NCBI GenBank assembly: GCA_047495785.1
Contig: JBLDXI010000029.1
Location: 1,302,001-1,366,000 of the forward strand
Source: Lepidodermella squamata
Taxonomy: Eukaryota > Animalia > Gastrotricha
DNA: 64,000 nt
Direction of reading: 5' to 3'
Within the stretch, counting starts at the first letter, position 1. Every line of letters starts with the position of its first letter. The translations under genes and the position numbers were made by a program. The notes beneath the pieces were generated by a model. The model worked only from the letters and a program-made list of their open reading frames with translations, was not told the origin of the DNA and made no database searches. Shown here one piece after another: positions 2,901 to 40,693 of the stretch.

Positions 2901-3260
2901 ATGCCTTCGATTAAAACCGGTTTTATTTTTGCGGCAGTTATTTTCGGCTTATTAAGCCAAGTTTCGGCCAATTTCAACGAGAGTAATGACGAAATTCTTG
3001 AATCAATCGTAGCTAAACGTGGACCAGCACCTGGCAAGCTCCACCCAGCAAACGCCTTCATCCGGAAAATCAACATAGCGAGCTCGAGTACGACTGAACA
3101 ACCGTCGCTACTTTACTTTTTCCCATCAAATCGCCAGCTACTGAAGCGATCAGTTGGTCATCACAACAATGCATACGGCAGGCGCCCTGTCGAACGCAAG
3201 GATGAGAGACGTCTTCATCCTCACCGCAGCTCGACGACAATGCGACCATATTGGAGCTAA
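2901..3260 (+). CDS. Secreted peptide precursor 1 (possible SVGHHNNAY-amide)
   Basis: Signal peptide MPSIKTGFIFAAVIFGLLSQVSA; KR sites; KR-SVGHHNNAY-GRR amidation signal; AATAAA at 3377. Confidence 0.85.
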   Translation: MPSIKTGFIFAAVIFGLLSQVSANFNESNDEILESIVAKRGPAPGKLHPANAFIRKINIASSSTTEQPSLLYFFPSNRQLLKRSVGHHNNAYGRRPVERKDERRLHPHRSSTTMRPYWS

Positions 3261-3573
3261 ATATGTAGCTGAAATGCGTGGAAATCTATGACGAAAAAAA
3301 ACAATGCAAATCAACGTTTTATGTCCCATTGGTGTACCGAGTGCGTTGCGCTAATATCCCGTGAGAGTTGATTTCAAATAAAACAAAGCTATAACCTCAT
3401 TTCCGATTTAGCGTTAATGATTCAGCGTATAAGCTATTAGTTCGCATTATTAAAAAACAATTGTTAGGTACAAAAAAGGCGTATCCCACAGGTCAACTTG
3501 CCCACATTCCATCGCGATCATTTCATTCGTTTTTTTGTGGTCTGATTGATATATTAGCGTTTTTTACGATATT

Positions 3574-3888
3574 ATGGCCTACAAAATTTTCATCGAGCTA
3601 ACCTTGGTCGCGTTTTTTCTGATAGCGATAATATCTGACGTCGAATGCGTTCGCCCGGGCTTCAGACTGGTTCCACCAGACCGGAGCGTCGAATCTAAAG
3701 ATTTGCAGTCATTTTACGGCGCTATGGACGAGGTGGAGGCGGAAGAAATGATTCAAGCTCTCCTGACGCAACTCATGAGCAAGCACATGATAATCGAAGC
3801 GCCGGCGCCGGCCAGAGTTGTCGCGAAGCCCCAAGCGCGCAGACTCCGATCGATCAACTCGAGCATGCATCGCAAGATAAGAAAGTAA
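3574..3888 (+). CDS. Secreted peptide precursor 2
   Basis: Signal peptide ending DVEC; intronless; AATAAA at 3955. Confidence 0.8.
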   Translation: MAYKIFIELTLVAFFLIAIISDVECVRPGFRLVPPDRSVESKDLQSFYGAMDEVEAEEMIQALLTQLMSKHMIIEAPAPARVVAKPQARRLRSINSSMHRKIRK

Positions 3889-4058
3889 TTATGCGGGGTT
3901 TACGAAAAACAATGCGGCACGATGATCCTCAACGCCATGTTTTTGTATAGTATTAATAAAACCAACCATTAGACCGATGACATGACGATCCCGTTGGGAT
4001 ACTGTGTTTTTTTCACGTGGTCACTGAAATGTCCGAAATTTCAGTTTTTCAAGCTAAA

Positions 4059-4241
4059 ATGAACGGCCTGAAGTTGTTACTAATATTGTTGACTGTGCTG
4101 TCGGCAGTCCTGATCGGCCAGGTTGCTTCAAGAAGATACCGCAGGAGGTGGTTTGACGCAGATTCCAGAGATTACTACTTTCGAGACGGCCAATTCGACG
4201 TTGATCCCTTTTCATTTGGGAAATTCTGGAAACACCGCTAA
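4059..4241 (+). CDS. Secreted peptide precursor 3 (paralog of 4)
   Basis: MNGLKLLLILLTVLSAVLIGQVAS signal; RRYRRR; YYFRDGQFDVDPF; AATAAA at 4359. Confidence 0.8.
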   Translation: MNGLKLLLILLTVLSAVLIGQVASRRYRRRWFDADSRDYYFRDGQFDVDPFSFGKFWKHR

Positions 4242-4481
4242 GCCGAGCATCGATGTCATTAGTCTCTATCGGAACTCCACTCCACTACGTCACTAATGAC
4301 TCATTTGAAAGAAAACCAAACGAGGCGTTGTAAATCCATTGTGAATGACAGGTCTTGAAATAAAAATGCGATGCATAATCACTTAAATGTTCCATAATTC
4401 CCCGATGTGAGTTCATTTTATCAGAACGCAGTGTCACAGAATTTTTCGAGATTTACAGACTCTATTACGACATAAGTTAAA

Positions 4482-4709
4482 ATGTCCAATTTGAAACTAA
4501 CTCTGCTATTGTTGGTACTCGCAACTGCTTTGATCATTCAACACATTTCAGCAGGACCAAGCAACAGACTGCAAATGTTAGAAGAAGGCGACGATGATGA
4601 TCTTGGCTACTTCAACAACGATCGATTCAGCAGCGATTTTTTCGCGTCTGAAATATCCAAGCGCCGACAAAATAGACATCCGGCAGCCCAGCTTGCTAAT
4701 AGGGCTTAA
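4482..4709 (+). CDS. Secreted peptide precursor 4 (paralog of 3)
   Basis: MSNLKLTLLLLVLATALIIQHISA signal; GYFNNDRFSSDFF resembles gene 3; KRR site; AATAAA at 4833. Confidence 0.8.
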   Translation: MSNLKLTLLLLVLATALIIQHISAGPSNRLQMLEEGDDDDLGYFNNDRFSSDFFASEISKRRQNRHPAAQLANRA

Positions 4710-5087
4710 CCGCGTAAAATCGTAAAAATGACTCATTTCAGCTACGCAAGAACTATTTTCGATCCGGAACGCAAGTAGAACCTTTCCTGATTTGTCTTGC
4801 TTCTAATTTTAGCCCTATTGCTTGATTAGCGAAATAAAATAGTATGACACACAACGCTTTTAGGTCTTGTTCCAACGGAAGGGAATCAGGGCGTGGCGGC
4901 GTTCAATCAAGCGGAAATCACTTGGCACACAGAAGCAACATGAATTCAATTAAGTGACAAATGTTGTCACAGCAATTAACTCCCCATTGGACACTTGGAA
5001 AACGGTGGATGCTACCCACGCATAATTTCCCATTGCCACTTTTTTCACCAGAACCTTCTATTTATTCGAAATTCATCAAAATTTGGG

Positions 5088-5336
5088 ATGGCTGTTTCAA
5101 AGCTCGTTTTGCCAATGCTTTTCGCTATCGTACTAGCGGCGGTTCTGTTCATGGCCGATTTTGCCGAGTGCAATGCGATTGATGCGGATGATACGAGTGC
5201 TGCCGATTTAGAATATCTTGCCGAGATCACCGGCAACAATGCTGACAGACTCGAGCTGTACAACTCGATGATCAAACGAGCGAATAAATGGAAGAATCCA
5301 GCAAGTGTGAGGCTCGAAATGGCCGGCGGAATCTGA
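5088..5336 (+). CDS. Secreted peptide precursor 5
   Basis: Signal peptide, acidic pro-region, KR-ANKWKNPASVRLEMAGGI; AATAAA at 5434. Confidence 0.85.
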   Translation: MAVSKLVLPMLFAIVLAAVLFMADFAECNAIDADDTSAADLEYLAEITGNNADRLELYNSMIKRANKWKNPASVRLEMAGGI

Positions 5337-5606
5337 AAATTACAGCCAACAAACTCAATTTTAGTGCGAAAGTCCCCTCCCCTAGTGCATTGACGTGCTA
5401 GATCTGAAATGAATTTTAGTGGACAGACTAAATAATAAATTTTGATTTTATATAACGTGCTATGGTCTCGTCTGTCAACTAATTACGAAACAAAAAATGA
5501 GACATGATTTTTGTGAGGGGAGAATTGATTGACATATTCATCAATACGTCTTTTCTCCTTCGTGAAGCGCGTGTAAATGCAGTACCATAGTATTTTTCGG
5601 CTGAAA

Positions 5607-5846
5607 ATGGGGAAACTAGTTATTATTGTTGCATTCACTTTGCTATTGGCCTGCATCTTAGTCACAGCTATCCCTCTACAAAGTTACTACCGTGTTGGAT
5701 CGCTGCATGGCCTTGATGATTTGAGCAGATTGGACAGCCACACTTACGATTCGAAATCAGACGAAAAAGCTGTTGATGGCAAACGATCAGCTAAAATCTA
5801 TCCGAAGACGCATAGTAGGAAAGGCGGACGCAAAGGCAAACGCTGA
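5607..5846 (+). CDS. Secreted peptide precursor 6
   Basis: MGKLVIIVAFTLLLACILVTA signal; internal GKR and terminal GKR (amidation-type) sites; AATAAA at 5923. Confidence 0.8.
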   Translation: MGKLVIIVAFTLLLACILVTAIPLQSYYRVGSLHGLDDLSRLDSHTYDSKSDEKAVDGKRSAKIYPKTHSRKGGRKGKR

Positions 5847-7042
5847 AGATGAAACAAATTACGCGAAATATTTTTCGACAGCTTATAATATTGACCATCT
5901 CTATATTCACATTGTTTCAGTAAATAAATCCCTTCAATGTCCCAATGAGGTCTTTAACCAGTTATCGATTCGTTTGTTTCTCGATTCGTTGTCAACCGTC
6001 GAAGTGAGTCTTATTGACTGCTTCGAATTCACTTTGAATTTAGGAGAACCGGTTGTAATAGTATTTTCAAAGAATAGTTTCGCTTGTGATTCATACTTGT
6101 GATGCATTCCGCATTATGGATCACAAAACCTGATTAACACGGACCTGTTGAATTGCTATCTTCCTAGTTGTTCTCACGGGCTAAGAGTCCGGGCTACGCC
6201 CACCTAGGGAATATTGCTGCGGACAACACAATATTCTGAAAATAACTAAATGTTTACGATCATGTTAAGGAGTGGCCATCAGCCTATCGTAATTGCACTG
6301 ATTCCGTGTCAGGACAAACATCATTGTTTATTTGAAAAACAATACTCCGCTAGCAGCAGTTATCCAAAGACACACGATAGATGCACATTGGTTTATTTTA
6401 AGAAGAAGCAGTTTTGTTAGAAAAGAACTCGCACAATAAATGTAGCGGTATAAAAAATTACGGTGGGTAACAATCTTATTGTCCCTTCCCCAGTAAAGCT
6501 CGAGGGAACAAGCAATAACAACTCTTACCATTGGTCAACTGCTGGCCTTTTCGTGACGAACGATGGGATTTACAAAATTGAGCATGCTCAGGCGTGAATG
6601 ATTGCGCTCGCGTAGTACTGTTAGCGATAAATTGGGACTGACTCGTTGCTATTTTGAATCAAAACATCCTATACCAAATTTGATACTGGCTAGAGGCTAG
6701 ACAGAATTGATTAGAAATACTATCGCGCGGCCACGCTTTAATTTAGAAACGCACTTTTCATACAACGGCTCAATTTCACTCACGCATCAACTGCGCACGA
6801 TTGATTTTACGATCAGTGACGCCACACCGGTCATTGCCTTATTGCTTTTATATGCAGTCAATTAAAATCAACTGCCGGAATAAACTAAACCCTCAGATTT
6901 ACGCTTATCCGTGATGAATCAAACACAGTACTAGGCAACAAATGCCCCCGGCTTCAAAACTTGGCCATTCACTGAAAAACACGTACTCATTGAATTTATA
7001 AGACGATATTTTCAATCTTTCGAAGCTTTTATACTTAGGAAT

Positions 7043-7393
7043 ATGAAAGGTATCGCATTTTTGAGCCAGGCTACGGTTGCGATTAGCCTTATCGCTTTCA
7101 CAGTGGCTGTTCCACCTTCATCTCGCGGCTACATCGATCATTACAGAGCTGCGAAGGCAATTCAATTAGCCGTCGAGGAGTCGAAAGCAGCGGATCGTCT
7201 CGCCGCCGCCGCGACGTCACCTGCGCGACTGTTCGTTCTGAGGACAGGTACAAATCGCAACTTGAACGTACCGAAAAATCCGACTACTATCTATCTACCA
7301 GGAGACGAGTATGTCGCGCAGCAACTACGTTCATCCAGGAAGCTTTTCCCTCGCGTCCCCGTTGCTAAAAACACCGTGGTTCAGTATTTCTGA
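7043..7393 (+). CDS. Secreted peptide precursor 7
   Basis: Hydrophobic N-terminus ending FTVA; Cys-free; AATAAA at 7431. Confidence 0.75.
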   Translation: MKGIAFLSQATVAISLIAFTVAVPPSSRGYIDHYRAAKAIQLAVEESKAADRLAAAATSPARLFVLRTGTNRNLNVPKNPTTIYLPGDEYVAQQLRSSRKLFPRVPVAKNTVVQYF

Positions 7394-7605
7394 TCGATTC
7401 GTCTGTGATATGATACGTTGACGTCACATTAATAAATCAGAGCGGCGGATGAGTCAAGCTTTCATTAATTTGATTAAAAATGGCCGTGGCCAGAGTTGGG
7501 AATTGGCGATATTTAAAATTCCACCCCTTTATTGAGCCCACTCAATAAAGTCGAATAATTTAAGGTTTACGATAAATACGAGCTAAATCAAGCGCATACA
7601 GCAAA

Positions 7606-7980
7606 ATGGCTACAAAATTGGTCGCTATAGCGCTGGCTCTAGCAGTCGCTAGTGAAGCTAGACCTTCTCTATTTCGTTGGGATAATGCTGGGCCAAAAAC
7701 AGTCACCACCGAGTATTTACGAATCGCAAAAATGCCACAGCGCAAGGTGAAAATCAATTCGCCTTACTTGCCTCACAGCAGCAATCATGGATTGAGGCGA
7801 TCTATAAGACGAGCGCCTGTTTTCGAGAAGAACGGTGGCAGTGACAAGATTTATCTGGACCTCATGCGAACGCTTGGACTCAGCAACGCATTCAGGAACG
7901 AAAGATTGCCGGCGATGAACAACATGTTAGCGGAGAAACTGCGAAACACGCTCAGTTCACGAGGAATCATATTCATGTAA
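7606..7980 (+). CDS. Secreted peptide precursor 8
   Basis: MATKLVAIALALAVASEA signal; RRSIRR site; AATAAA at 8026. Confidence 0.8.
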   Translation: MATKLVAIALALAVASEARPSLFRWDNAGPKTVTTEYLRIAKMPQRKVKINSPYLPHSSNHGLRRSIRRAPVFEKNGGSDKIYLDLMRTLGLSNAFRNERLPAMNNMLAEKLRNTLSSRGIIFM

Positions 7981-8054: not shown

Positions 8055-8429
8055 TTAAGTTTCTTTTCTAACAACAAAACGAGATGGTCCTGCTGGTTTC
8101 CTGCTGCGATGAGTGTCTTCATGGGTTGGTTCTTTAGCGAGCCATACGGCAGCTCCAGGTTTGATAGCCGCTGGTTTAGTAGGCATCATATCCTGAGCAA
8201 GCCTGTTCATTGCCGCGGCCCATTTTCTAGCATTATCGACGTTTGAAGGTAGAATAGGATTTACGGTGCTTCGGTCAGCAGCATCCGCTACACGCATAAG
8301 CATTTCTTCGTTGATTTTCACCGCACTCGGCTTGCTGCCATCCAACACGCTGAACTTGGACGCGATTCGAGCAGATGCCACATTCACCAGGGCGAAAAGT
8401 GCGATTAGCAGATATAAATTCTGAGTCAT
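8055..8429 (-). CDS. Secreted peptide precursor 9
   Basis: MTQNLYLLIALFALVNVASA signal (internal ATG of ORF 8055..8549). Confidence 0.8.
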   Translation of the reverse strand: MTQNLYLLIALFALVNVASARIASKFSVLDGSKPSAVKINEEMLMRVADAADRSTVNPILPSNVDNARKWAAAMNRLAQDMMPTKPAAIKPGAAVWLAKEPTHEDTHRSRKPAGPSRFVVRKET

Positions 8430-9713
8430 CTTCACTAAAATAATTCGGAAAATAATTGGATGGTAATTTGTCTGACTCGGCACTAGAGTGAAAAGTAGGG
8501 AGACGGATATGTAATGCGTGGTGGCTAATTTACTTCCGATACGTGCCACAGGAAATTCGAGAATTTCTCTCCTGTAGATTAGCCTAGAGAGAATGATGTT
8601 GAGGTTTGAGGTCTTTTGAGTCTAACACCACGCTCCCGTAATACCCTGGGTATAGGTTCTCCAAGAATAGAATCACTGTTTTACGCGCTATTTTACGGTA
8701 AGTAAATTGAATACTCGTTTTAACACGGACGTGTTCTAATTTCACGCAAGAAGGTGGGAGGTAAGGAAATCAACATAATAGTACTGTCCAGATGACGCTA
8801 CGCTCAGGGTAAAAACTGGGGGAGAAATGCTGATGTGAGAGCGAATAATAGCTCCTTGAGGAAGCAACGTAATAAATTATTCGAAATAATTACGCATTTA
8901 TTACGAGTTACAAGGAGTTGCAAGGAGAGATCCTACAATTTTGAGAGAGGAAAATTTGACCTTTCGTTGTTTGCCTCCATTGAAGCAATTTCTGTCACAT
9001 TTACGTTGATATCCGCCCTAAGACTTCAAGCCAAAAACCAAAAACCGTTCTGCCTAATTTGGCGGGAATTCTGAAGCTATTTTTAAAGATATACGTTTTC
9101 AGCGGAACAAATTTCTGTGCTGAATTACAGCCGATGACTGGATTGTAAATAAATGAAGTGATACAATAATTGCAAAAGGGTGCATCAAGTCACTTTGGTT
9201 ACTACTCGTGTAGAAATCGTTTACCCAGCTGTTTATGCATCAAATGGCCTATTTTTCAAACGGTAAGGTAGAGGGATTAGGTCCTTATCGAAGCCTTGAT
9301 TGTTTACAGTTTACACGTCGGGGTGTTAATCTGAGTGGTTAAAAATATAATTATACTATAGGAAAAACATCCTGATGTAAAAAACGACAAAGCAGTTACA
9401 TTGAAACTAGCTTCTTCTCCCTCGTTTTCATCCTGCGTGGTGTTGTCTGGACAGTTTGCCCATCGTGATTTTCTTATTCATCCTACCCTGGACAAACATG
9501 ACGGAGAAATCACCGAGTTTGAACAGATGCAAGAGATGAGCACGTTTCGAACACCACGTTTTCCGGTAGTTTTAGTGGGACAAGGCTAATATCACGCTCG
9601 GCTGGGAACAAGCAGAGCGCGACGAAACTAATATGTGGAAGTGACCTAGACACTAATTATTAAGAATCCCATATGGCGAGTTTTTTGTAACAAAAAATAT
9701 ATTAGAGTTCGAT

Positions 9714-10226
9714 TTATTTATTCAGATCAACGGTTTCATTAGCTAAGAGTAGTCTGATGGGGATGCGCCGTACCGCAGTGTGACCGCTCATCGCCGTTCG
9801 CCGATTAAGCCAATTATCGACATTATTAACGGGCATCAGGATTCGGACCACCTCCGCCGCTTGATCCAGCCGGCTTTTTTGCCTCGGCTCGCGGAATACC
9901 TCCTTCAGCAAGAACGAATCGTCTGCCATGGGTACAGCCCACGCCGGACTCAAGAGGCCTAGGTGAAGTGTTGTAATCACGTGCCGCAGTACACGCCATG
10001 CGTCGTTTTGCTTCGACGCACTCCGCTCAATCGACCAGTCGTAGTAACGAGCCGATATCGGCGGCGGCTTATCGCTCGGCTTTTCCGCCCGCGTTCGATT
10101 CAGCACCGTGAGACTAGTCCTCACATTCGGCCTGACATTGCGGCAGCAAATTCCGTGAATGAACGCGAATCCTACGAACAGATTCACGGTTACGAAAGCC
10201 ACTGCCCGGGAATTGAATCGCTTCAT
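9714..10226 (-). CDS. Secreted peptide precursor 10
   Basis: MKRFNSRAVAFVTVNLFVGFAFIHGICC signal-like N-terminus; Cys-free mature region. Confidence 0.65.
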   Translation of the reverse strand: MKRFNSRAVAFVTVNLFVGFAFIHGICCRNVRPNVRTSLTVLNRTRAEKPSDKPPPISARYYDWSIERSASKQNDAWRVLRHVITTLHLGLLSPAWAVPMADDSFLLKEVFREPRQKSRLDQAAEVVRILMPVNNVDNWLNRRTAMSGHTAVRRIPIRLLLANETVDLNK

Positions 10227-10393
10227 GGCTGGAAGCTGAAAAATGAATGGAGCGAGGACACACATAGCCCCCTCCCCCTCTGGCTCAAGTGTTGAGGGTG
10301 TATGGGCGAAAAAATAGTTTTATTGTCCTACGATACATTAAATCAATGATAAAAAAGCAATATATCGGCTTTATGATGTCCTCAAGAACTAGC

Positions 10394-10813
10394 TTAAGGT
10401 CCGGAGAGCTGTTTAACCGGTCTGCCTTTACTGCCGCTGCTCAACTTCAGCGAAACGTAATTCGCAGCTGAATATGGCGTATTGCTTAGTGGTTCAAATT
10501 TTCGATTAAAATCACTGGGTGATGGCCTTTGCTTCATACGATCAGCTAATATTGCTGCGGCGATGCTTTTGTAGGCTCGGCCTGCGTTGAGAGCTACTAA
10601 TTGCTCCTCGGGGCGGGCCATGCTCATAGCATTTGAATGAGGTTGTTTTGCGCCTTTGATGATACTTTTGATCCAACCATTCACTTTTGCTGTCTCGCTG
10701 TTTGATTTGGTCGTTTCTGCTGTAAGGCGATTTGCATCAGCTTCAAGCAGCAGCAGGAGCAATTCGAAAGTCAGAGCCAATGATAGTAGATATTTGCGAG
10801 TGATAGAAATCAT
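10394..10813 (-). CDS. Secreted peptide precursor 11
   Basis: Leu-rich signal ending EADA; TATA-like sequence about 35 bp upstream. Confidence 0.8.
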   Translation of the reverse strand: MISITRKYLLSLALTFELLLLLLEADANRLTAETTKSNSETAKVNGWIKSIIKGAKQPHSNAMSMARPEEQLVALNAGRAYKSIAAAILADRMKQRPSPSDFNRKFEPLSNTPYSAANYVSLKLSSGSKGRPVKQLSGP

Positions 10814-11510
10814 TTTACCTCAGTGCGATTCAAAAGATTCACGTTATATAAGCTTTAGGTTTGGATATAAGTATCAGCCTCTGCAAAATGTTTGTCTGCT
10901 AAGATAGGAAACGGAGGCTGACTGTTCTGCAATGTTCCAAAGGTGTTGAACATCCAAATGTCCACTTGAAACTTCACGGAAGCTGGAGGGTTGAGTGGTT
11001 GCACCTCGTTGGCAACTTGACACTCAATATGGCAACCACGCCTTGATGAACTCATAGCGCCTATCTCTTATCCGGTGAATAATCTATTTTCATTCCATTC
11101 TTGCATTTGTTAGACTTCGAGTGAATAGGAAAATAAGGATTAAGCTTATTACATTATTCTCTCTAGTGGTGGATGAGGATTGGGACATCCCTCTTCTTGC
11201 ATTGCTTGCGTCGTATTTTCAAATGAAAACTTAGCAGTGCCTGTCTGTACGCTCAGAGCCAAATTCTGATTTTCGGTTTTGGAGCACGGATTCTAACTAA
11301 AACGAAGCTGATAGGTATATCAAGGATCCCCCATGTTGACATTGGGTAATTTAAGGTGAAGTACCTGTTCAGCTATGGGCATCTCAGTTTCTTTGTTAGA
11401 TTCGCATGGTAAATAGGACAAAGCTATGCAAGTGATATATTTTATTTTCGGTAAAGGGATTAGGAATGATACATTGTATTGTAGTAAAAATATAAGCCAC
11501 TGAAGTAAAA

Positions 11511-11950
11511 TCAATTCTTATTGAAATGAACAAATTGCCCATCGCCGTCTCCTGCAGCTTTGTTCAGGTAGAGCCAACCTTCTACCCCACCGGCATCATT
11601 CGGCTCGCTCATGAGACTGCGCTGATCGGCCGAATTGAACAAATCAGAAACAGCTAAAGCATGAAGGTCCCCTGCTTCCATTACATCCTTTGGAGTAGCA
11701 GTAGCTTGTTTGGCTCTGAGACAGCTGAATTTGATTGAGCTTTTGCTTTCTCGATGCTTTTCGTGAACGGGTTGCGGATTCCGCCTCTAAGCTTAAGTTG
11801 GGGTCGCTTGGTCGAGGTGACTGGCATTGTCAGCTTCTGCATACGAGCTTTATCTAAAAAGTAGCTGCTACCCTTACTGTAGGCCCTCGCTTCAATGCTT
11901 GCAGCGATCCAACCAAGAGCTGAAGCAACAAAAATCAAGCCAGCTCGCAT
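11511..11950 (-). CDS. Secreted peptide precursor 12 (stop at 11681 as read; probably extends to 11511 across a 1-bp frameshift)
   Basis: MRAGLIFVASALGWIAASIEA signal; a second frame continues QATATPKDVMEAGDL...HFNKN* to 11511; minus-strand AATAAA at 11441-11446. Confidence 0.65.
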
Positions 11951-12237
11951 TTTTTTGAATTTCGAAATATAAATAATGAGAGGTGTGGTGAATGAACGTC
12001 AGCAACCCTTACAATCACGGGGGCGAACCCCCTTCTTTTTATAACCTGCATTAGCATAAATTAACGGCCTTGAATTCGGGCAATCAGTTTTATTGCTAAG
12101 ATTTCGACCGTATCAGGCGTCATGTAAAAGACTTGGCTTAATTAGCCGAAAATGCTGTTATAAATAGACGGTGATATCTAATAGCGTAGGCTAAGGCTAC
12201 TATCAGCGTCTGACAGCATGAAGGATCAAAAATTGCG

Positions 12238-12513
12238 TCAGTTCTTGGGCGGGGCTCGGGCGAACCAAGTTCCTGCTGGCGCCCCGCCAGCTTGCGCCTT
12301 TAGTAGCTGAATTTTCTGCGAAATCCGAGCGCTTGGAGCCTCTTCAAATTGGCTTTCTTCGATAGCTTCAGCGGCGGAATCTCCGTCGTCGTAGAAGCCA
12401 GCTTCCTCCAGCTGCTGCTGCTGGTCCTGAACTGGCATCGGTCGCATTCGCAATTGCAGAGACAATGAAATCATCGCAAAAAGACATAGGGACAAAGTTG
12501 TAAAGTGAGCCAT
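12238..12513 (-). CDS. Secreted peptide precursor 13 (WFARAP family)
   Basis: MAHFTTLSLCLFAMISLSLQ signal; acidic middle; C-terminal GTWFARAPPKN. Confidence 0.85.
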   Translation of the reverse strand: MAHFTTLSLCLFAMISLSLQLRMRPMPVQDQQQQLEEAGFYDDGDSAAEAIEESQFEEAPSARISQKIQLLKAQAGGAPAGTWFARAPPKN

Positions 12514-12837
12514 TTTTTTACAGAAATTGCTGCTTCGATTCAAATTTTCTGCGATATATAAGCCAAAGCAGGGTGACAATTTACAGGAAGGATTAGGCTC
12601 ACGGGAGGATTAACGTGTTTTTGCAGGATTTAATTAAGATCCAAGCCTTAAAATAGTCCCCTCGACGGACGTACTGGTGTGAATCGCTACGTGTGACCGG
12701 ATATTGCTTTTTTATTAAACGCAAGCTCTTGGCAATTCGGAAACCTCACAGGGAATACACACAGTAGGCGTTAATCGTTAAGATTTCCTTTCCCCCCCAC
12801 AAGGATAAATGATAAAAGTGGTCCTTTTTATTCTAGG

Positions 12838-30679: not shown

Positions 30680-30964
30680 ATGTCAAAAATAATCATTTTT
30701 GTTGGGTTAACCGCTTTTCTCCTTCAGCTTGCGATTTCGAATGCAACTCCGGCGAAGAGATATGCGTCTTTGAATAATCTCATCAGCAAACCCCGCTACG
30801 GCCCCGGCTTGTTTGAACAGCCCGAACATTCGCCGTACTACGAAACTCCAGAAGAAGGGAATGATCACGACCACGAGCCTGAAGTCGCACGACGCTCCGG
30901 CCGGCGCCCACCATCCATGGGCCGCCAGAGCATGAGCTTGAATGGGGAACATTCTGGAAAATAA
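30680..30964 (+). CDS. Secreted peptide precursor 33
   Basis: MSKIIIFVGLTAFLLQLAISNA signal; KR-YASL; RR sites; terminal GK. Confidence 0.85.
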   Translation: MSKIIIFVGLTAFLLQLAISNATPAKRYASLNNLISKPRYGPGLFEQPEHSPYYETPEEGNDHDHEPEVARRSGRRPPSMGRQSMSLNGEHSGK

Positions 30965-31242
30965 GGAATACTGGCCCTATTCGAGAAAGACATTCATATA
31001 TAAGAACTCGGTGGTAGTGTGTATAATTCGCATTCCATAATTGCGTTGTTTTATTTCGAATAAAAAAGCATTCGATTTTTATCAGGTGGTGTATTTGCCA
31101 ATTTAATTCCTGTTTACCCTGCACGCTCCGTGTGCCTCGTTCCCGATGAGTGGGTGCTTGTATTTCTAGCAAATATAGGACCAGGACCATTTTTCAAATT
31201 TCACTTGTTAGAAATTTTAGGTTTTTATAGCTACCGCAGACA

Positions 31243-31491
31243 ATGTCGAGAAATCTGTTGGCCTTCGGAATTTTCGCTATTTTGGTCATCATGCTGATCA
31301 ATGTTGATAACAGTGAAGCTTCAGCTGTTGTCCTATCAAAACAACGCCAGCGTATGAAGCAGGTAGCTAGCAAGCGTGACTTCAACGGCAGAAGCAATCG
31401 CCATTTCCTCGAACTGGCTAAGTTCCTCCGCCCGTCAAGTGGTGTCGATACACAGGAAGAGGAGGAGGAGGACGCACTCGAGGATAAATGA
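31243..31491 (+). CDS. Secreted peptide precursor 34
   Basis: Signal peptide; KR-DFNGR; poly-Glu tail. Confidence 0.85.
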   Translation: MSRNLLAFGIFAILVIMLINVDNSEASAVVLSKQRQRMKQVASKRDFNGRSNRHFLELAKFLRPSSGVDTQEEEEEDALEDK

Positions 31492-31669
31492 TATCAACCT
31501 ATTGATCCGACTCAATGAGATAACTATTGATTTACAATGATAATCCCGATGCTTTTGTTTTGTGACTCATAATAATACCCCGTGACCGTATCGGCTTATT
31601 TGTCAATAAAGCCCGCGATGAAAATTTAATTAAAGAATTATGCTCGTCTCCCACCGCGTAGCAATCGCA

Positions 31670-31870
31670 GTTATGAGATTGATTTCTGGCAAGATTTGTT
31701 GTTTTGCGAATTTCGCTTTATAGCCATAGCTGTGGATGGATGGCAGGCCACAAATCATCGCCCAGAAGTATGAGATTGATATCTGGCTGAATTAGTTTGT
31801 TTTTGCGAATTTTCTTTCAGCCATATGCCGTGGATGGCTGAGGGCCACAAATCATTATTCATTGCCCAGA
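31670..31870. repeat. Two-copy imperfect tandem repeat of about 100 bp
   Basis: tatgagattgat.tctggc...ttttgcgaattt...agccata..gtggatgg..ggccacaaatcat..gcccagaa occurs twice head to tail. Confidence 0.8.
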
Positions 31871-32124
31871 ATTTTCATGGGCCTTTTTTTAGCATAATTG
31901 CCGACAAAATGCCAATTTAACGACCTCTACGCAAAACAAATCTCACCGCCCTTGAGTAAATATATGCGCATATCGATTCTCCATTAGGTGTCATTCAACA
32001 TTGCGCAGGCGTGTGGTTTGTTAGTCATTTGTTCACTTTGTCTGATTGGTTTCCGCCAAGACGTTTACAGGCTCCCTCTCAATTATCTCAATTTTCTTCT
32101 CTTAGACTTTTGAATTTTGAAATA

Positions 32125-32367
32125 ATGTTCTCCGGGTCCAAGCAACTTATCGTCTGTCTTGCGATAATCATCGTAATGGCGAGCTGCGTTCTTCATTCGA
32201 GCAATGCAATGCCTGGCCAGATTGTGGAGGTCTTCAAGCGATCAGCGGCTTTCGGCAACTTCGGGCGAGCTGGGCTCAAGCACTTTCAAGCGCGAGAGTT
32301 CATGCCGAGCGACATTGATTCAAATGATGAGCAGCTAGATGAAGACACCCAAGTGGATTATGAATAA
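32125..32367 (+). CDS. Secreted peptide precursor 35 (GAFG family)
   Basis: Signal peptide; FKR-SAAFGNFGR; acidic tail. Confidence 0.9.
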   Translation: MFSGSKQLIVCLAIIIVMASCVLHSSNAMPGQIVEVFKRSAAFGNFGRAGLKHFQAREFMPSDIDSNDEQLDEDTQVDYE

Positions 32368-32611
32368 TTAAGCCCTTTTTCGAGGCATATTTTCATGTTT
32401 CGCTAAATAAAAGCTGGACTTGCACTTTTGATAACCCGTCGTACTTGATATTCATCGGAGATTTCTGGCTTGTCAAAAAAGACGAGTAAAACTGACTCAG
32501 ACACCTCCCTGAGGGGCAGAGTGCGTGTACCATCGCTGAGATAATTACACAGACACACCATTATCTCAACTTTAAAGGCAAGGATCTTTTTGCTTTTTCA
32601 GTATATGATAT

Positions 32612-32830
32612 ATGATGGCGTTCACTAGCTTTCGAACGCTTCTGCTTGCGATCTTTGCTGTTTTTATGTTGGTTGCTATGGATGCTGTTTCGGCTATCCC
32701 GCGCTGGAAGCCCAGCGAGATGGGAGATCTGTTCGTCAAGCGAATGGGCTCGTTCGGGCGATTTGGCTTTAAAGGCGGATTTGTGGACCCGGAAGATGCT
32801 TCACAAGGCCACGCCTCGCATGAAGACTAA
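32612..32830 (+). CDS. Secreted peptide precursor 36 (GAFG family)
   Basis: Signal peptide; KR-MGSFGRFG. Confidence 0.9.
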   Translation: MMAFTSFRTLLLAIFAVFMLVAMDAVSAIPRWKPSEMGDLFVKRMGSFGRFGFKGGFVDPEDASQGHASHED

Positions 32831-33387
32831 GCGTCTAGTTTCCCGAGGTTTCGTCATTTTTGCTGTTTCCATCGTAACTTACCCTCAAATTATCGGAAAA
32901 ACCTGATATGCGCACATGGCAGAGCGAAAGAGCTGGAAACTTTTTTCATTTGCCTTGAATTTTGTTTCGCTTGTGTAAATGATAAATAAAAGCAAGCATG
33001 GTTTGCTGTGGTTGGTAATTTCGATCGTCTTAACTACTACTGCGAACGGAGATAAGGCTTTCGAACTAGACTGCGTACTCCCTTGACCTCTGGAGTACTA
33101 ATATAACCAGTGTCGCGAACGATGGTCCATAAAAAGAAATCTGCCAGTATCTGAAGCGATTAAGCAATTTGATGACGTTTAACTGACGATTCGGAGTCTT
33201 TTTGCAAGTTCAACGTCAAAAACCGAGTTATATTTTCTCATTATAGCTATTAGATAATATTATCTCCTAGGAAGCAACGAACTACGGAAGCTACTGCAGG
33301 CCTATTTGAAACTCAAAATTACATTTTTTCGCATTTCTTTAGTGTCTGAAATAGTCAAGGAGTACCGCTACAAAACGCAAAACGTAC

Positions 33388-33567
33388 CTAATTCCGAACC
33401 CTTAAACAATCCTGTGATATTCCTCGAAAAGTGTGTTTTGAGTTGTAGCATTCGAGTTTGCTTCTATATTTTTTCGACTTCCTGATGTGCACTCTGCTCG
33501 CCAAAGCAGCTGTACAGCCGAGAATGAGGATAAAAGTCATCACAACACGACTCGTCACGCGCTGCAT
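33388..33567 (-). CDS. Possible small secreted basic peptide with 2 Cys
   Basis: MQRVTSRVVMTFILILGCTAALA signal-like start; 59 aa; opposite strand to its block; no family motif. Confidence 0.4.
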   Translation of the reverse strand: MQRVTSRVVMTFILILGCTAALASRVHIRKSKKYRSKLECYNSKHTFRGISQDCLRVRN

Positions 33568-33971
33568 CTTACCATCCCCTGGGAATTCCTGATCCAATTA
33601 TTTCACAATGTGGACCTCAGGATTGAGCAACCTTAACCTCATTTAACCGCTCTCTCCCGCATTAATCATTATATTTAATAATTAATGATGAATCAGAACT
33701 AATAAGTTACTTTTTTTGTCTTGAGGTCACTGTTAAGACAACGGAAATTTCACATCGGCGAAATTTCCAGAAACTAGGGCGCGTGTGGGTTTGACACATT
33801 CCTCATTAATGATTTTCTCTTCTTTCTTCTTCGCTTTCCCGCTCGCAGAAAAGCTATTTATATTTCATGGACTCGCTGTGGATTAGTTTCAATATCACAA
33901 AAGCATAAAGCTAATTTCCGCTGACAAGCGAGTTCGAATTTTTCCGTTCGCATAACGTACGGTATTGAAAC

Positions 33972-34211
33972 ATGAACAAATCTTTCGCAGTTTTAATCGC
34001 GTTCGCAATCGTGTTGCTTGCCAACGAAGTCGTCAGCGCCTATGACGATGACATCGACACGGCTTCGCTGAACCGCTTCCTGGCCGGTGAAAAGCGATTT
34101 CTCAAGTCGGGGTTCGCGTCGGAAGACGGCAAGCGAGTATCGAAAGCGAAACCAGCTCAGTGGAAACGAGATGGTCACCGAATGGCTATGAAAATGAAAT
34201 CAAAAGCATAG
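33972..34211 (+). CDS. Secreted peptide precursor 37
   Basis: Signal peptide; KR-FLKSGFASED-GKR (amide) and further KR sites. Confidence 0.85.
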   Translation: MNKSFAVLIAFAIVLLANEVVSAYDDDIDTASLNRFLAGEKRFLKSGFASEDGKRVSKAKPAQWKRDGHRMAMKMKSKA

Positions 34212-34357
34212 GCTGCTTTTTTGTGAAAAACTAGCTTTACGCATCACCGCTTCCTAAACCCTTAACTAACCTTTGCTTTCAAATCAACCCAAATGAATTT
34301 TCTGTTTAGTAAATCAGTGAAACTGTTCAATATTTCGCAGCCGTTTTATTTAGGAAA

Positions 34358-34657
34358 ATGAAGGTATATTTGGAGTATCTCGCTCTTATCTATGGTTTAG
34401 CGACGATATCAGTGCAGGCCGATGAAGAAGTTCCGGATTTTAACCGAGACAAGCGAGCTGTGAAAAGCAATCTGGTCTATGTGAAGAACGGCGGCGGCGG
34501 AATTCTCTACAAAGTGAAAGGAGCGGGCAGTACGAAGCGCAACGAACCACTGCTAATATTCGATGATAAGTCTAAAGGGAAGCTATTCAAAGTAATGAAA
34601 GATGGACAATTATCGGCTTATCGCAAGCCACGGCACCGAATGTTTAGCAGAAATTGA
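34358..34657 (+). CDS. Secreted peptide precursor 38
   Basis: Signal-like N-terminus ending VQA; RDKR and KR sites flank two similar units (GGILYKV / GKLFKV). Confidence 0.8.
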   Translation: MKVYLEYLALIYGLATISVQADEEVPDFNRDKRAVKSNLVYVKNGGGGILYKVKGAGSTKRNEPLLIFDDKSKGKLFKVMKDGQLSAYRKPRHRMFSRN

Positions 34658-34940
34658 CAATTTGCGTGACGAATCTGCGACAAGTTGCAATAAAAATCCA
34701 ATTACGGCAGCTAGTTTCCATTGTCTAGAAGAGATTGTTCATTAATTCATTTTTTCCGCGTCACTTGCGCTACGTGGAGTGACCAGAATAGAAAAATTCG
34801 TGGAATCGATTTTACCCCGCAATTACTAGGTATACAATTATATCTTTCTCGCCCACAGAGCAGCGAGGCTCCTCAAAAGAAAAAGGAAGATAAATTGACA
34901 CCTCATTTTTCCTCGTCGAACTTCAGAAAGAATTACGTCG

Positions 34941-35231
34941 ATGAAACTTTCAATTTTCCTCTTCATTTCATTCTTACTATGCGTCCTAACCGAGGCTCTG
35001 GTACGGAATCCCAAACTTGCTGAAAAGGTCAACAACCGAAGAAATTCTATCAAAATGAAGCAAATGTTAAAGCAAGGCGCAGTCAAACGGACGACGCCAT
35101 GTGATCAGGTCGTCGCTGCACCGACTGCTTCGCCAATCCGGGCTCAAGCTCCGCAGGCTGTCAAACAGCTTAACTCGATCGATCGTGGCTATGATTCGCT
35201 GAAGCAACGAGCCGATCGCTTGCAGTTCTAG
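34941..35231 (+). CDS. Secreted peptide precursor 39
   Basis: MKLSIFLFISFLLCVLTEA signal; RR and KR sites. Confidence 0.8.
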   Translation: MKLSIFLFISFLLCVLTEALVRNPKLAEKVNNRRNSIKMKQMLKQGAVKRTTPCDQVVAAPTASPIRAQAPQAVKQLNSIDRGYDSLKQRADRLQF

Positions 35232-36855
35232 AAAATGCCATTGTATGCGTACATGCTAAGTCTAAGTCACTCTTAAAGGTAGCAATTCATCTCGGAGCTC
35301 CTCAATTAAGCTGTTGCCATTAATAGCTTTCACGTACCCGCATTTGGCTTTGATTTTGAACTCTGATTGTTAGGCGCAATTTACACGTATAAACTGTAGC
35401 TGATAATATTATATAACTAAATCGACGGAAGAGAGATTTTGTCGGGAGTATTTTGAGAAACAACCAATTTCTAAGCTTTTCATCAAACGCAAACCATGAT
35501 TTATTGTAATTTTCGCTGTGTCGTTAAAATACTGATCAGGCCTCGTACACAAATTTTGCAGAATTCTATGGTTTTTTATTTGGATTTTTTGATAAACTAA
35601 CGATGATATCTCAGCAACTTGAAAACGGCTTTGTTTTTACAAATGAAATATTCATAATTTTGTATGGCGATAAATTCGACCATTGCATGTCACGTTTCAG
35701 GCGTAAGGTAAAAACTGCTAAGCATCGTGTTAGCTTTATTTTTTTTTAATTTGCGATAATATTGGAATCTAGGCAGATCGTAATATATCGTGGAATTTTC
35801 ATGACATTTAGGACAAAACCCCGCATTACTGTCCATGATGCTTCCATTCATCGCCAAAAGACTATATAAATCTTGGACACTACGAGCAGACGAAATTCGA
35901 AACCTGTCGCGCTAAGTTTAGCCTATTATATTCAAATTCACCCTCAATAACAATGGACAAAGCTTCGTGTTGAAACGTTCGTTTCTAAAACCAGCAATGA
36001 AGCCAATGCCAGTGACCCTTTGAGTGCGGCAAATTCTACGCTAAACAGCCACTGAGCGGGACTACGCCAAAAATGACACTAGTATCAATAATGCGTATCG
36101 AAAGAGGCCTAAAAAACTTGACACGTGACGACTGACTGCGAACATTTTTGTCGATAAATGGCTTTAATTAATCATTCCTGAGGCGTAACTTCGGCAGTTC
36201 TTGTATCGTTTTTTGTATTTTTTAATGTTTATAAAATAGACTGTTTTTTGCTTTTTTGTTTGGTTGTTTTGGAGCAGTGCGTATTACAACTTATTTCTCA
36301 ACTAGCTTTATTTTGGACATTGAAAGGAATACTGAAGGCCATTGAAAGCCGTACAATTTCCCCCGTTCGATTCCGTTCTGATTTTTCGTTATTTCCTAAC
36401 TCAAAATTTTGAAAATAATTAGGTTAATCTCATTTCTGCCACCACGCGCACGCTTTTTCGAACAGAAGCCTGATTACCCTTGTAGGTCTCGCAAGTAACA
36501 AGAAATAGCGGGCAAGATGCCAATTGATAATCTTATGTGAAAGGAAAAAGCCATCACGCAGCTGAATTCCCACAGAGCTTACGACGCATCCGCTCTCGAT
36601 ACCGCACCGCCAAAGCCTTCTGATGAAATGAGGCAGAAAAAATGGCCCGCACTGACAGGAAAATCGAACGTGTTTTACGCGTTGATTGCGCTCGGCGGCA
36701 CAGCGATTATGTAATTAGCAGAGCCTAAATGTCGGCAATCCCGTCAAGTGGGTGTCCTCTTCCAGGCAATCTCCAGATTATTCTTTTTTCTACAAGAATA
36801 AGCACGGAAAATATCGAAAGTCAGCAGATTCCGTTACTCTCAGACAGCTAAAAGC

Positions 36856-37485
36856 ATGGCAGATACGACTACAATTTTCGCAACATTTTTGCTTGCAGGA
36901 TGTTTAGCTTGCTTCACAGAAGGCTTAGGAAATTTCGGTAACATGGGCTTTGTTGGGGCTAGTAAGCTTCGCCAACAAGACATTGTTATGGACGATAATA
37001 TAGTCGATGCTGGTGATTACGAATTCGTGGAGAAGCGAAACGGCCTCGGGCGTTTCAAAGGAGGTTACGGCGCCTCGGCTGTCAAGGTCAAACAGCCGCG
37101 ATCTCGTCGTCATGCCGATGAGGAAGAACACGAACACCTCACCTCAGTGTCAACGAAGCGTAGCGGCCTCGGTCGGTTGAAGGGCGGCTACGGCGTCACA
37201 GCTGTCAAAGTTCGCAAAACTCGCTCACTTGAAAAGCGAGCTAAAGCTGGCAAGGGAGCGTATGGCGTCTCAATGCTGAAGCCAACGAGTTCGAAACGAG
37301 CCCGGTCTGGCAAGGGGGCATATAGTGTCGTCGTGAATAGACCCTACGACAAACGAGGAAAGGCCGAGCAAAAGGACATCATTGCTGATTACGCCGATTT
37401 TTTTCTTCGAAAACGTCGAAGCATTGACTTAGGAACGAAACAAGGCGGTAACTTCATGATTGGCGATGTCTTCCAGGCTTACTAA
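36856..37485 (+). CDS. Multi-copy prohormone-like precursor 40 (KG[GA]Y repeats)
   Basis: Signal peptide; at least 6 KR sites; repeats NGLGRFKGGYG, SGLGRLKGGYG, AKAGKGAYG, ARSGKGAYS. Confidence 0.9.
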   Translation: MADTTTIFATFLLAGCLACFTEGLGNFGNMGFVGASKLRQQDIVMDDNIVDAGDYEFVEKRNGLGRFKGGYGASAVKVKQPRSRRHADEEEHEHLTSVSTKRSGLGRLKGGYGVTAVKVRKTRSLEKRAKAGKGAYGVSMLKPTSSKRARSGKGAYSVVVNRPYDKRGKAEQKDIIADYADFFLRKRRSIDLGTKQGGNFMIGDVFQAY

Positions 37486-37871
37486 CAAGCTAAGGACACA
37501 AATATGACGGGTCAGTGCGACATTCGTGGTACCCTGATACTTTTCATCATCATGATTTTGGTTCTTAATGAGTATCCGAGTGAATTGTAAAGTCTTCCCA
37601 ATCAAAATAAAGTTTGTGAGTATGTTTTGGTGTTATTCTTCGAGGCAATGCGGCCGTTTTCGCTTTTATCTACTTACATATTCCACAGACACGATCGTGT
37701 TATATCGAATTAGATAAGGGGCGAATTATACTCGTGGGTGGTTATCGCTGCGAGATCATTTTCCGTAAATTGAATTTACATGATGTCCGATACGAAGTCG
37801 AGTTTCTAAATAAACGTTTTATTCCGAGTGCGGTACCAATAAAACATTCACCCAGTTCCTATCCGAACAAA

Positions 37872-38282
37872 ATGCAGTTAGGCAGCAGGCCTTTGACCAT
37901 TTTTACCTTTGTCATCATCGGAGCCTTGACTCTACCATCTAAATCAACCCCCATTCCTGATGTTGTTGATGAAGATGAGGGCGAGGTTTATGCAGAAGAT
38001 CCTTACGAGGACCAGGTGGACGACCCTGAAGTCGAAAGTCTAGCTGTTTCTAAACGCATGGCACCTCGATGGTTATCGCGAATGAGGATGTCGCAGCTAA
38101 ACACAGACCGATCTAAGTATTTCGACATGGTGTATCCGCAACCGACGTCTGCGGAACTGACAGGCCTGGGAGCTAAGCGCGGAATTATGGTTTGGCGACA
38201 CAAATCTAGCTTTCCTTTCGTCTCTGAGAAACGGCGTGCTTTTGTGTATCCAGAGGACAATATCGCTAACTGGGACTATTGA
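37872..38282 (+). CDS. Secreted peptide precursor 41
   Basis: Signal peptide; acidic pro-region; three KR-delimited peptides. Confidence 0.85.
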   Translation: MQLGSRPLTIFTFVIIGALTLPSKSTPIPDVVDEDEGEVYAEDPYEDQVDDPEVESLAVSKRMAPRWLSRMRMSQLNTDRSKYFDMVYPQPTSAELTGLGAKRGIMVWRHKSSFPFVSEKRRAFVYPEDNIANWDY

Positions 38283-40351
38283 TCTCAGCCTTGTTATTTG
38301 ATATTTTAATGTAAAACAGACGTATTATGCGCTAATAAACTCATCGATTGTAATGCGCCTGCGTGGGAAGTTTCTCAAGGTATTACTTGAACTGGCTGAA
38401 AAGTGAAGAAATCAATTCATCAATATACAGTTGTTTGTGTATAGTCTAGACTTGTATCCCAGACTGTTTCTAGTGGCTGGCGCTGTAGACCTCCCAAGCA
38501 AAAAACATTGCACAATCCGCGGACTTCGAATATCTGATTCGGACTGATTCTAACGGCGCGATAGTAGTCCTAATTATGCCCAACTTCATACTATCACCTG
38601 ATGCACGGAGTAAGGAGCAAGCTATCTCTCAGGGTTATTCGCCTTTCCCCGATAAGATAAGGCCTAGCCGAGGGTAAGTATATATTGATCTGCCAGTCTA
38701 TGATAAAACCAATAAAAATCGAATTCGCACCCGCGCAATTCGATCGAGTGCGAAATTCTAGCCTGAAAGATAACGGGGTGCCTCGAATCTATGGCCAGAA
38801 TTTTCCTTTTTCCCGATCAGACTCAATATAAAATAATGATTTTTCAATTATTGATACTACTTCCTATTTCTCACCTTTCCAGCTCCCAAGTCCGGATATA
38901 AGTATTTGTTTACGCCCGCTCGCTTTTTGAGCCGATAAATGGGGGCGAGAAACAAATTACAGCCGCCTGATTTCCTTCACCTATGGCAACACCCTGGGTC
39001 CGACTTGTAATGAAAAAAAATCTCTAATCTGTCGGCGGGCGTGGTCAGCTGTCCTCCCCGCCGATTTGAACCAGGTGACCGCACCTAGGGGAATACGTGG
39101 GTAAGTAGGATAATAATGGGGGCTTGAAATCAAATATTATAACGCGTCTTTAGAGGGAAACAAGTCTGACACTAGTTGACAGACGTCATTAAACCCACAC
39201 TCAAAGCTTTATACTACAGAAGCCAGGCATCACTGACTAATCTCTATAAAGCCATTGTTGGTCAATTCTGCTTAAAACGGGCTATTTTAAATCGAAATAT
39301 TGCTATTTCAGCCGATTGAAAAATATGAGTGGGTATAATTTGGCCCGAATCATGGCAGAAATGAGCAATTTTCTCACTGAGAATTCTCCCACGCTTCGTG
39401 GTGACCATTCGAAACGCCCACAGCACTCATAGTGTCCTATTTCACGTTAATTTGTCTGATGTGCCCGTAGAATCGCTATTTGAAACCTTTCAGCAACTGC
39501 TTTATGCTGCTTATTTACTACTCCGCGCTAGGACACATCTAGTAGCTGTGAAATTAAATTTCCGTAGAAATTCAAGTTCTGCCCGCATGAATTTCTGACG
39601 TAGTAAACATCTATATGCTATGAGTGTGATATGAGGGAAATCCTTACGAACAAACATTTAGGAAGCCTTTAAGTATTTGAATAAAGGTGGCTTCGTTCCA
39701 AGTTCTTTACACTAATCAAGCATTTCATCATCGTTTTAAAACTGCAATAAATTCCCCATAAATCATCAACTGCGTCAGTAAATTGTAGATATACGTGCTC
39801 AAATTGCACCAGAAAACCGTAGGCCCAATCCTGAACGTTCACACGAATCCTAGCATTAACATCACCTTACCTAAATCCTTACCATATTATCGATCGAAGC
39901 AGCTCGAAGATTCCCCATTCTCGATTCGTGGTTAATCACCCTTAGCCTTTACTTATGCGTGTTTACTTGAAATCAATTCGAAACGCTAACCTTCCTTTGT
40001 TTTCCCTATTTTTAAATCTAATTGCTTCGCGTGAATTATGCCCAATCAATCACTTCTCAATGGGGCTGAAAGGGGTCACCATTTTCCGCTTGATTCATAG
40101 AGCAATGATCTCAACTCAGAACACAGAAAGGTTTAGTAATAAGGGCCATTTCGCATATTAATGTGATGGCAGTAGCTTCATGACACATGTTCCTCATATC
40201 CGCATGCATTTTACTAAAAGCCATGTGACTCTCGTTAATCGCTTGATACCTGGTACACAACAAGGTTCATATCTATCATATTTCAATAGCTAATAGCTGT
40301 TCGTCTCACTTTTTTAGATATTAAACGTTGATTTTATTTCCTTCAAACATA

Positions 40352-40693
40352 ATGAGCTCGAAGTTTCTGCCTTTGGCTGTCGCCGCTGTTGTCTGTCTCG
40401 TCATAATCCAAACAACTTCGGCTTCTGATCAGCTGCTGAACCGACAGAGACGTGGCTTCGGCGCTGTGACATGGCGTGGCCGTATGGGTATGGGCGGCCT
40501 GGCGCCGGCGAACAAAAAAGCCGTGCTAATCGCTATTCCGCTTGAAGAAAGCGAATCGCAATCTTACGATGCGTTGGCGGAAGCGCGGAAACGCGGTCTC
40601 GCTGGGTTCAGCTTCGGCCGCTCGGGCCGCATGGGAGTTGGATCGCTCGGGCGCAATCGGCCTGTCATCCAAACAATCGTCGACGACAATTAA
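40352..40693 (+). CDS. Secreted peptide precursor 42 (two GRMGxGxL peptides)
   Basis: Signal peptide; RQRR-GFGAVTWRGRMGMGGL and RKR-GLAGFSFGRSGRMGVGSL. Confidence 0.9.
   Translation: MSSKFLPLAVAAVVCLVIIQTTSASDQLLNRQRRGFGAVTWRGRMGMGGLAPANKKAVLIAIPLEESESQSYDALAEARKRGLAGFSFGRSGRMGVGSLGRNRPVIQTIVDDN

Follow-up and report, generated by a model that had tools for sequence, protein, structure and literature searches.

Known clusters of secreted peptide genes

Neuropeptide genes of animals are usually dispersed, and the secreted-peptide gene clusters known from single lineages typically consist of some ten genes that belong to a single recognisable family. In the gastrotrich Lepidodermella squamata, a stretch of 64,000 nt (hereafter the window; contig JBLDXI010000029.1 of assembly GCA_047495785.1, positions 1,302,001 to 1,366,000 of the forward strand) holds 42 genes for short, putatively secreted proteins, packed in 38 kb between positions 2901 and 40693 of the window. 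Probably this locus is an old tandem array whose genes, for secreted peptide precursors and for small secreted proteins, have diverged past recognition. About half of the 42 genes look, from their sequences, like precursors that would be cut into peptides.

Several described systems share some of these features. The Bomanin cluster at 55C of Drosophila (PMC4411088) is likewise compact, is confined to one lineage and encodes short secreted peptides; the Bomanins, however, comprise about ten genes of one recognisable family with a CxxC motif, whereas the 42 genes described here are mostly unalignable and avoid cysteine, with 7 cysteines in 3623 mature residues and no motif of the Bomanin type. 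The nlp-29/cnc clusters of nematodes (PMC2453101) also consist of tandem genes for small secreted peptides, first named neuropeptide-like and diversified by duplication. Their products are Gly/Tyr-rich cationic peptides of one family, encoded by genes with introns, whereas the sequences of the present cluster are unrelated and the nematode markers tested were not found in the genome. Hydra antimicrobial peptides (PMC10945409) and the skin peptide clusters of frogs (PMC13128954) are similarly orphan and fast-diverging, and share the order of signal, pro-piece, Lys-Arg (KR) and mature part; there, however, an acidic pro-piece precedes a cationic mature peptide, while in the largest family found here (GAFG, named after its motif) the acidic part is a tail that comes after a conserved Gly/Phe head. 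The layout of micro-exon secreted genes (MEGs) was not seen, since all but one of the 42 genes consist of a single open frame and no splice joints occurred in the complementary DNA (cDNA) contigs.

Animal neuropeptide and prohormone precursors cut by the convertases PC1/3 or PC2 resemble the third of the three strand blocks into which the cluster falls (block 3). In both, the signal peptide is followed by a short pro-region, often acidic, KR precedes the peptide and the products are free of cysteine, and two multi-copy precursors are present in the block. The cluster differs from such precursors in that it has no match to a described peptide family, amidation is not enriched, and most GAFG products would be 28–54 residues long with acidic, His-rich tails. 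Lineage-restricted clusters of secreted peptides are already known; this one is unusual in its size, its heterogeneity and its avoidance of cysteine.

Gene content and organization of the array

Candidate genes were taken from a six-frame list of open reading frames (ORFs) as ATG-initiated ORFs of 55 aa or more that have a hydrophobic core free of charged residues close to the N-terminus, and signal peptides were called throughout by this hydrophobic-core heuristic of our own. The interval 2901–40693 contained 41 such ORFs, compared with 1.6±1.4 in shuffled sequences (maximum 6, n=100). Background numbers were low, with six in the other 26 kb of the window and four in the 40 kb upstream of the window (together 10 in 66 kb), and the borders of the cluster are therefore sharp. 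After curation the total was 42 genes (41 intronless and one spliced) of 60–209 aa, or one per 0.9 kb, arranged in three co-oriented blocks: eight genes on the forward strand (2901–7980; block 1), 17 on the reverse strand (8055–22347; block 2) and 17 on the forward strand (24905–40693; block 3). The median intergenic distance was 324 nt and the coding share of the cluster was 36%.

An earlier note, made by a model from the sequence alone, had described about 42 genes with a spacing of about 0.9 kb in blocks of +8, −17 and +17. Count, spacing and strands were the same after curation. Its claim that all the genes start with a signal peptide agrees with the excess of 41 ORFs over 1.6 in shuffles obtained with the heuristic, and its statement that all but one are intronless also held, 41 of 42 being single-exon with the exception at 21957–22347 (−).

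Transcription and constraint

The sequence of the array carries several marks of real genes. A codon-usage model trained on the non-cluster genes of the window scored the annotated frame as the best of six in 41 of 41 ORFs; when stop codons did not count towards the score, this frame was still the best in 30 of 41, where about 7 would be expected by chance. A poly(A) signal lay within 250 nt past the stop codon in 36 of 41 genes (median +77), compared with 36% of random positions. Upstream, an initiator (Inr)-like TCATT was present within 100 nt before the ATG in 17 of 41 genes (18% at random positions; 3 of 41 on the antisense strand), and a TATA element within the same distance in nine of 41 (6% at random).

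Contigs of run X1 (2015) were recognized as cDNA because their ends carry poly(A) tails and SMART cDNA-adaptor sequence. The cDNA comparison covered seven block 3 genes within 24.8–30.8 kb. The contigs formed one island per gene on all seven, intergenic bins had a depth of zero, and no splice joints were found over this interval. These seven genes are transcribed as separate unspliced mRNAs, and transcription, which the earlier note had named as a check on its proposal, was thus confirmed for seven of seven genes in the interval. A loose end with SMART-adaptor sequence at 30128 was considered as a cap site and was not used, its orientation being unlike that of a simple 5′ end.

Among the differences listed between X1 and the window in the seven ORFs, 18 were synonymous (423 sites) and seven non-synonymous (1494 sites), giving a ratio of non-synonymous to synonymous differences per site (pN/pS) of about 0.11. 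Both changes inside a KR-GAFG core were synonymous. The only coding indel in the seven ORFs was 3 nt long, while indels of 4 and 2 nt sit in untranslated regions (UTRs) or keep the stop codon. The seven cDNA-covered genes appear to be under purifying selection.

These data bear on whether most of the ORFs are functional at all. They could have arisen by chance, or recently de novo, in DNA that is transcribed pervasively; most of them are without homologues, transcription is supported for seven only and the structural models described below are of low confidence. Such an explanation is nevertheless highly improbable given a 25-fold excess of signal-peptide-like ORFs over shuffles, strict strand blocks, avoidance of cysteine in all three blocks, the codon-frame signal and the placement of poly(A) signals past the stops. 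Constraint argues in the same direction, through the pN/pS of about 0.11 among the differences listed, indels that respect the reading frame and a GAFG motif that is conserved in another organism.

Composition and cleavage sites

Cysteine made up 0.19% of the mature parts over all three blocks, compared with 3.1% in the non-cluster ORFs of the window and 2.55% predicted from base composition. Avoidance of cysteine is one feature common to all three blocks, and the earlier description of the mature regions as almost Cys-free was accurate.

The blocks differ in charge, length and cleavage sites. Block 1 (2901–7980, +) consists of eight intronless genes starting at 2901, 3574, 4059, 4482, 5088, 5607, 7043 and 7606, and has mixed features: KR sites were not significantly enriched (6 versus 3.9 expected) and dibasic sites as a whole were weakly so (23 versus 16.8, P=0.04). 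The 17 genes of block 2 (8055–22347, −) encode basic, Cys-free proteins of 78–178 aa (mean 129 aa for the 16 intronless genes) with a net charge of +4.6 per 100 aa, and are depleted in KR (2 versus 9.7 expected). AlphaFold models of two block 2 proteins had a mean predicted local distance difference test (pLDDT) of 41 and 47, too low for a fold search, and proteins of this block are, judging from these models, probably disordered. Block 3 (24905–40693, +), with 17 genes of 72–209 aa, has the layout of Lys-Arg-processed precursors: KR occurred 29 times versus 7.7 expected (P<0.001), and the products are neutral to acidic. Strong KR enrichment was seen in block 3 only.

C-terminal Gly amidation signals were at chance level over the whole cluster (10 versus 8.8 expected, P=0.39). 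Classical-looking amidation sites were found in three genes only, those at 2901, 5607 and 33972; the gene at 2901 has a candidate amidated peptide between KR and G-RR. Of the convertase and amidation sites that had been reported for many of the genes, KR sites are strongly enriched in block 3 and depleted in block 2, and amidation signals show no excess.

The GAFG family

Eight genes between 24.9 and 32.8 kb form the GAFG family, defined by a signal peptide, a pro-region, Lys-Arg, a head of the form x-G-A-F-G-x-F-G and an acidic, often His-rich tail. The invariant Lys-Arg sits immediately before the sole conserved motif of the family. A search of the 121-Mb genome with the family profile detected no member outside this array.

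All members lie on the forward strand. The first two are at 24905–25141 (78 aa; placed by alignments and covered by a cDNA island) and 25374–25631 (85 aa). The second is the closest paralog of the first, with 40% identity (E 1e-15), and the differences between cDNA and window inside the KR-GAFG core of the gene at 25374 were synonymous. For the third, at 26249–26515 (88 aa; alignment and cDNA), the cDNA contig has 30 unmatched letters and then matches from 26207, which lies 42 nt upstream of the ATG; TATA is at −87 and TCATT at −52. The member at 28600–28833 (77 aa) has a long 3′ UTR, cDNA contigs covering 28665–29257; cDNA cover was of low depth at 29754–30017 (87 aa), and at 30289–30558 (89 aa) a contig covers 30128–30599. 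The last two members are at 32125–32367 (80 aa), the best own-genome match of the family profile, and 32612–32830 (72 aa), placed by alignment and by the family profile. A probable ninth member, diverged, is the 135-aa product of 27630–28037 (+), in which KR is followed by S-I-A-A-F and which also has further KR/RR sites and a poly-acidic spacer. Its cDNA ends in poly(A) at 28198, some 20 nt past a poly(A) signal, and has an in-frame 3-nt insertion variant inside a Glu run relative to the window.

Other families and multi-copy precursors

No DNA repeats of 40 nt or more were found within the cluster. All-versus-all comparison of the mature regions gave 19 protein pairs at E<0.1, compared with 2.3 in shuffled sequences, and nearly all of these pairs fell inside three small families; the remaining genes, about 25, are singletons. 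The genes are therefore mostly not alignable to each other, as had been noted before.

Besides GAFG, two families were detected, both in block 2 and both on the reverse strand. Three adjacent genes (12238–12513, 12838–13074 and 13346–13645) align and share the C-terminal motif W-F/M-G/A-R-A/L-P; the gene at 14931–15467 (−), which carries W-F-G-R-S-P, is a fourth candidate, and a genome search found no further copy of this family. The S/T-P-A-Q-x-F-R family comprises the adjacent genes 19426–19776, 20235–20597 and 21957–22347, which were aligned through a common basic helix and a C-terminal motif, and has a fourth, dispersed member on another contig (C33). The third of these genes (110 aa) is the sole spliced gene of the cluster. 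Its predicted structure consists of exon 1 (22347–22270), which is the signal peptide, a 58-nt GT..AG intron (22269–22212) and exon 2 (22211–21957), which bears the T-P-A-Q-H-F-R motif of both neighbours.

Related peptide copies within one precursor were found in two genes only, both in block 3 (+). The 209-aa product of 36856–37485 has two pairs of related units of 15–22 residues, each between dibasic sites (unit-pair scores 81 and 44), and its gene is single-copy in the genome. The last cluster gene, 40352–40693 (113 aa), encodes two units with G-R-M-G-x-G-x-L, each after a dibasic site. A candidate amidated-peptide precursor of 79 aa is encoded at 33972–34211 (+), with a 10-residue peptide between KR and G-KR.

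Homologues and a metagenomic relative

Pfam searches with 41 cluster proteins gave no significant match, the best being two chance-level matches with E 0.03, and profile searches of PDB gave none. A GAFG profile retrieved nothing from 5.8 billion proteins. Against 1.84 billion representatives it retrieved a single protein that is a true relative, 71 aa long and from an ENA metagenome; the second match of this search, a bacterial beta-helix protein, was rejected as spurious. A second GAFG profile that included the metagenomic relative returned only the two genes already in the profile, a profile of the S-P-A-Q-F-F-R family returned nothing, and scans of JGI metagenomes were blank. No match was obtained by exact look-up of 20 window proteins in a protein collection, and six cluster motifs were not found in the literature. 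The earlier note had recognized no described system, and these searches led to the same result apart from the GAFG genes of one metagenomic relative.

On the contig of this relative, two GAFG-type genes directly follow a divergent ferritin pair (2404–5992). One of its ferritins is 81% identical to the ferritin at 56262–56786 of the window, and the divergent pair, one gene single-exon and the other with an intron, is kept in both genomes (here 56262–58793). The GAFG genes adjoin the pair in the relative, whereas the array lies about 16 kb from it here. The relative's contig also carries a methyltransferase whose ortholog lies on the contig that contains the window, at a distance of 380 kb. Conservation between the GAFG genes of both organisms is limited to the KR-GAFG head. 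The presence of GAFG genes in the relative indicates that the family predates the split of the two organisms, the relative having a two-gene state and L. squamata a large array.

Processing, origin and regulation

On the reading that we prefer, the locus is an array of 42 independent mini-genes. Each has a short 5′ leader, and in many of them TATA or an Inr-like TCATT lies no more than 100 nt from the ATG. The ORFs of 60–209 codons, beginning with a signal peptide, poor in cysteine and followed mostly about 77 nt past the stop by a poly(A) signal, would deliver their products to the secretory pathway. Convertases of the furin/PC type recognize Lys-Arg where it follows a signal peptide and pro-region, and at least 10 proprotein-convertase P domains are present in the genome; in block 3 and part of block 1 such an enzyme would most likely cut after Lys-Arg. 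Linear peptides would be released with their conserved part starting at the cut, namely x-G-A-F-G-x-F-G or, in the two multi-copy precursors, the repeated units, and the conserved N-terminal head may be the functional part of the block 3 peptides. The longer, basic and probably unstructured proteins of block 2 may be secreted uncut, or cut at other sites, and their short C-terminal motifs could be the parts that act. The members of a family lie side by side in one orientation, but are not similar at the DNA level. Most likely the array arose by tandem duplication long ago, and the copies then diverged so quickly that the common layout and short functional motifs are all that is left.

Weighed against this interpretation are several points. 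Transcription support covers seven of the 42 genes, and for blocks 1 and 2 the case consists of sequence statistics; the pN/pS figure is likewise drawn from the differences listed for seven genes. That the products are secreted, cleaved and active outside the cell, whether as signals or as gland products, is predicted from the protein sequences. Since block 2 is depleted in KR, 'precursor' is perhaps the wrong word for it, and amidation signals are not in excess. Most GAFG products have no second cleavage site, which leaves predicted peptides of 28–54 residues with acidic, His-rich tails, unusual for classical neuropeptides. Finally, no upstream 8-mer (up to one mismatch) was present above shuffled controls, either in all genes or per block, and one shared regulator is therefore not indicated. 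Each gene seems, from its upstream sequence, to have its own core promoter. The earlier proposal of a co-regulated locus is accordingly not upheld, there being no such common 8-mer and many genes having an Inr-like or TATA-like element of their own.

The same features bear on what the products might do. All 42 genes might be strict neuropeptide or hormone precursors of neurons or endocrine cells, acting on receptors as a clustered peptidergic code. The signal peptides, the KR before a conserved motif, the multi-copy precursors and the Cys-free products suit this explanation, as do at least 10 convertase P domains and 39 matches to PHM/DBH-like monooxygenases in the genome, but it is unlikely to hold for the whole locus: the block 2 proteins are KR-depleted and 78–178 aa long, amidation signals are at chance, no Pfam neuropeptide family was matched and the GAFG products are long and acidic. 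The prohormone architecture claimed for the entire cluster accordingly fits block 3, with its invariant KR before the motif and two precursors with dibasic-flanked copies, and does not fit block 2, with its depletion in KR and its longer, basic proteins.

By analogy with known effector clusters, the products could instead be mass-secreted cargo from a single type of gland or epithelial cell, or from a few such types, used in defence, in mucus or adhesive, or in reproduction or as pheromones, rather than signals. Precedents are the clustered effector peptides of the Bomanins at 55C (PMC4411088) and of the nlp-29/cnc clusters (PMC2453101); the block 2 proteins are basic, Cys-free and, in low-confidence models, disordered, and fast divergence and orphan status are typical of defence and reproductive proteins. 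This is a possibility, albeit one that we do not favour, because the block 3 products are neutral to acidic and not cationic, the repeats or low-complexity blocks typical of structural secretions are missing, present constraint on the seven genes is purifying and not diversifying, and no common promoter motif was found.

On the preferred reading of a diverged tandem array, 42 expressed or expressible genes almost without mutual similarity share a common layout and lie together within 38 kb. Should the products be signals, the locus would hold a large untapped set of bioactive peptides and be a case of neuropeptide-like genes maintained in arrays; should they be gland cargo, it would be the parts list of an undescribed secretion. 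Either way, tandem duplicates can diverge down to a cleavage site and a seven-residue motif, which bears on the origin of 'orphan' genes.

Genome-wide observations

The copper monooxygenase domain of PHM/DBH-type enzymes had 39 matches in the genome, about 25 of them in one array (contig C13, about 1.99–2.36 Mb), many with in-frame stops. The numbers of monooxygenases and convertases may represent an enlarged peptide-processing toolkit or an unrelated expansion. A wider proposal is that the animal runs a greatly expanded peptide-signalling system, with hundreds of Cys-free precursor genes in arrays, an enlarged set of processing enzymes, and single genes or subsets marking individual secretory or neuronal cell types; we regard this as speculative and decidedly improbable.

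Searches of the genome for Innexin, Connexin, Troponin, nematode cuticle collagen and arthropod Chitin_bind_4 gave no matches, while the same search does find convertase and monooxygenase domains. A contig with mitochondrial COX1 was not found in the genome, and nor were nematode SL1, a rotifer spliced leader or, with up to two mismatches, let-7. An exact 20-nt match to mature miR-124 was located on contig C33 (2859271–2859290, −). This locus forms a weak hairpin in which the 5′ arm looks shortened, and scored 19.5 bits against Rfam mir-124, below the cut-off. The missing gene families, COX1 and SL1 had suggested a non-bilaterian animal, a reading that was given up on account of the miR-124 match.

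Flanking genes

On the left, a tRNA-Gln (CTG) gene (2464–2537, −) marks the border of the cluster, 360 nt before its first gene; tRNA genes can serve as chromatin boundaries. Further left, at 300–1710 (−), are two spliced genes with a signal peptide, several cysteines and introns of about 54–64 nt, whose sequences look like ML/NPC2-type lipid-binding proteins. This spliced, Cys-containing flank contrasts with the cluster genes. The gap between blocks 2 and 3 is occupied by an unrelated multi-ORF gene, probably spliced (22850–24725, +), which is not a family member and has neither a signal peptide nor a significant Pfam match.

On the right, the cluster ends ahead of an APH-type kinase and a spliced cytochrome P450. 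The flanking genes had been called intron-rich, which is true of the P450 and of one ferritin, both spliced, but the second ferritin is single-exon, as are two ORFs about 700 aa long. Farther along the window, ORFs of low complexity, rich in Gln/Pro and in Ser/Asn/Arg, lie on overlapping strands at 53568–54208 and 54305–55169, where an approximately 280-nt segment also occurs twice, on opposite strands (54305–54586 and 54855–55169).

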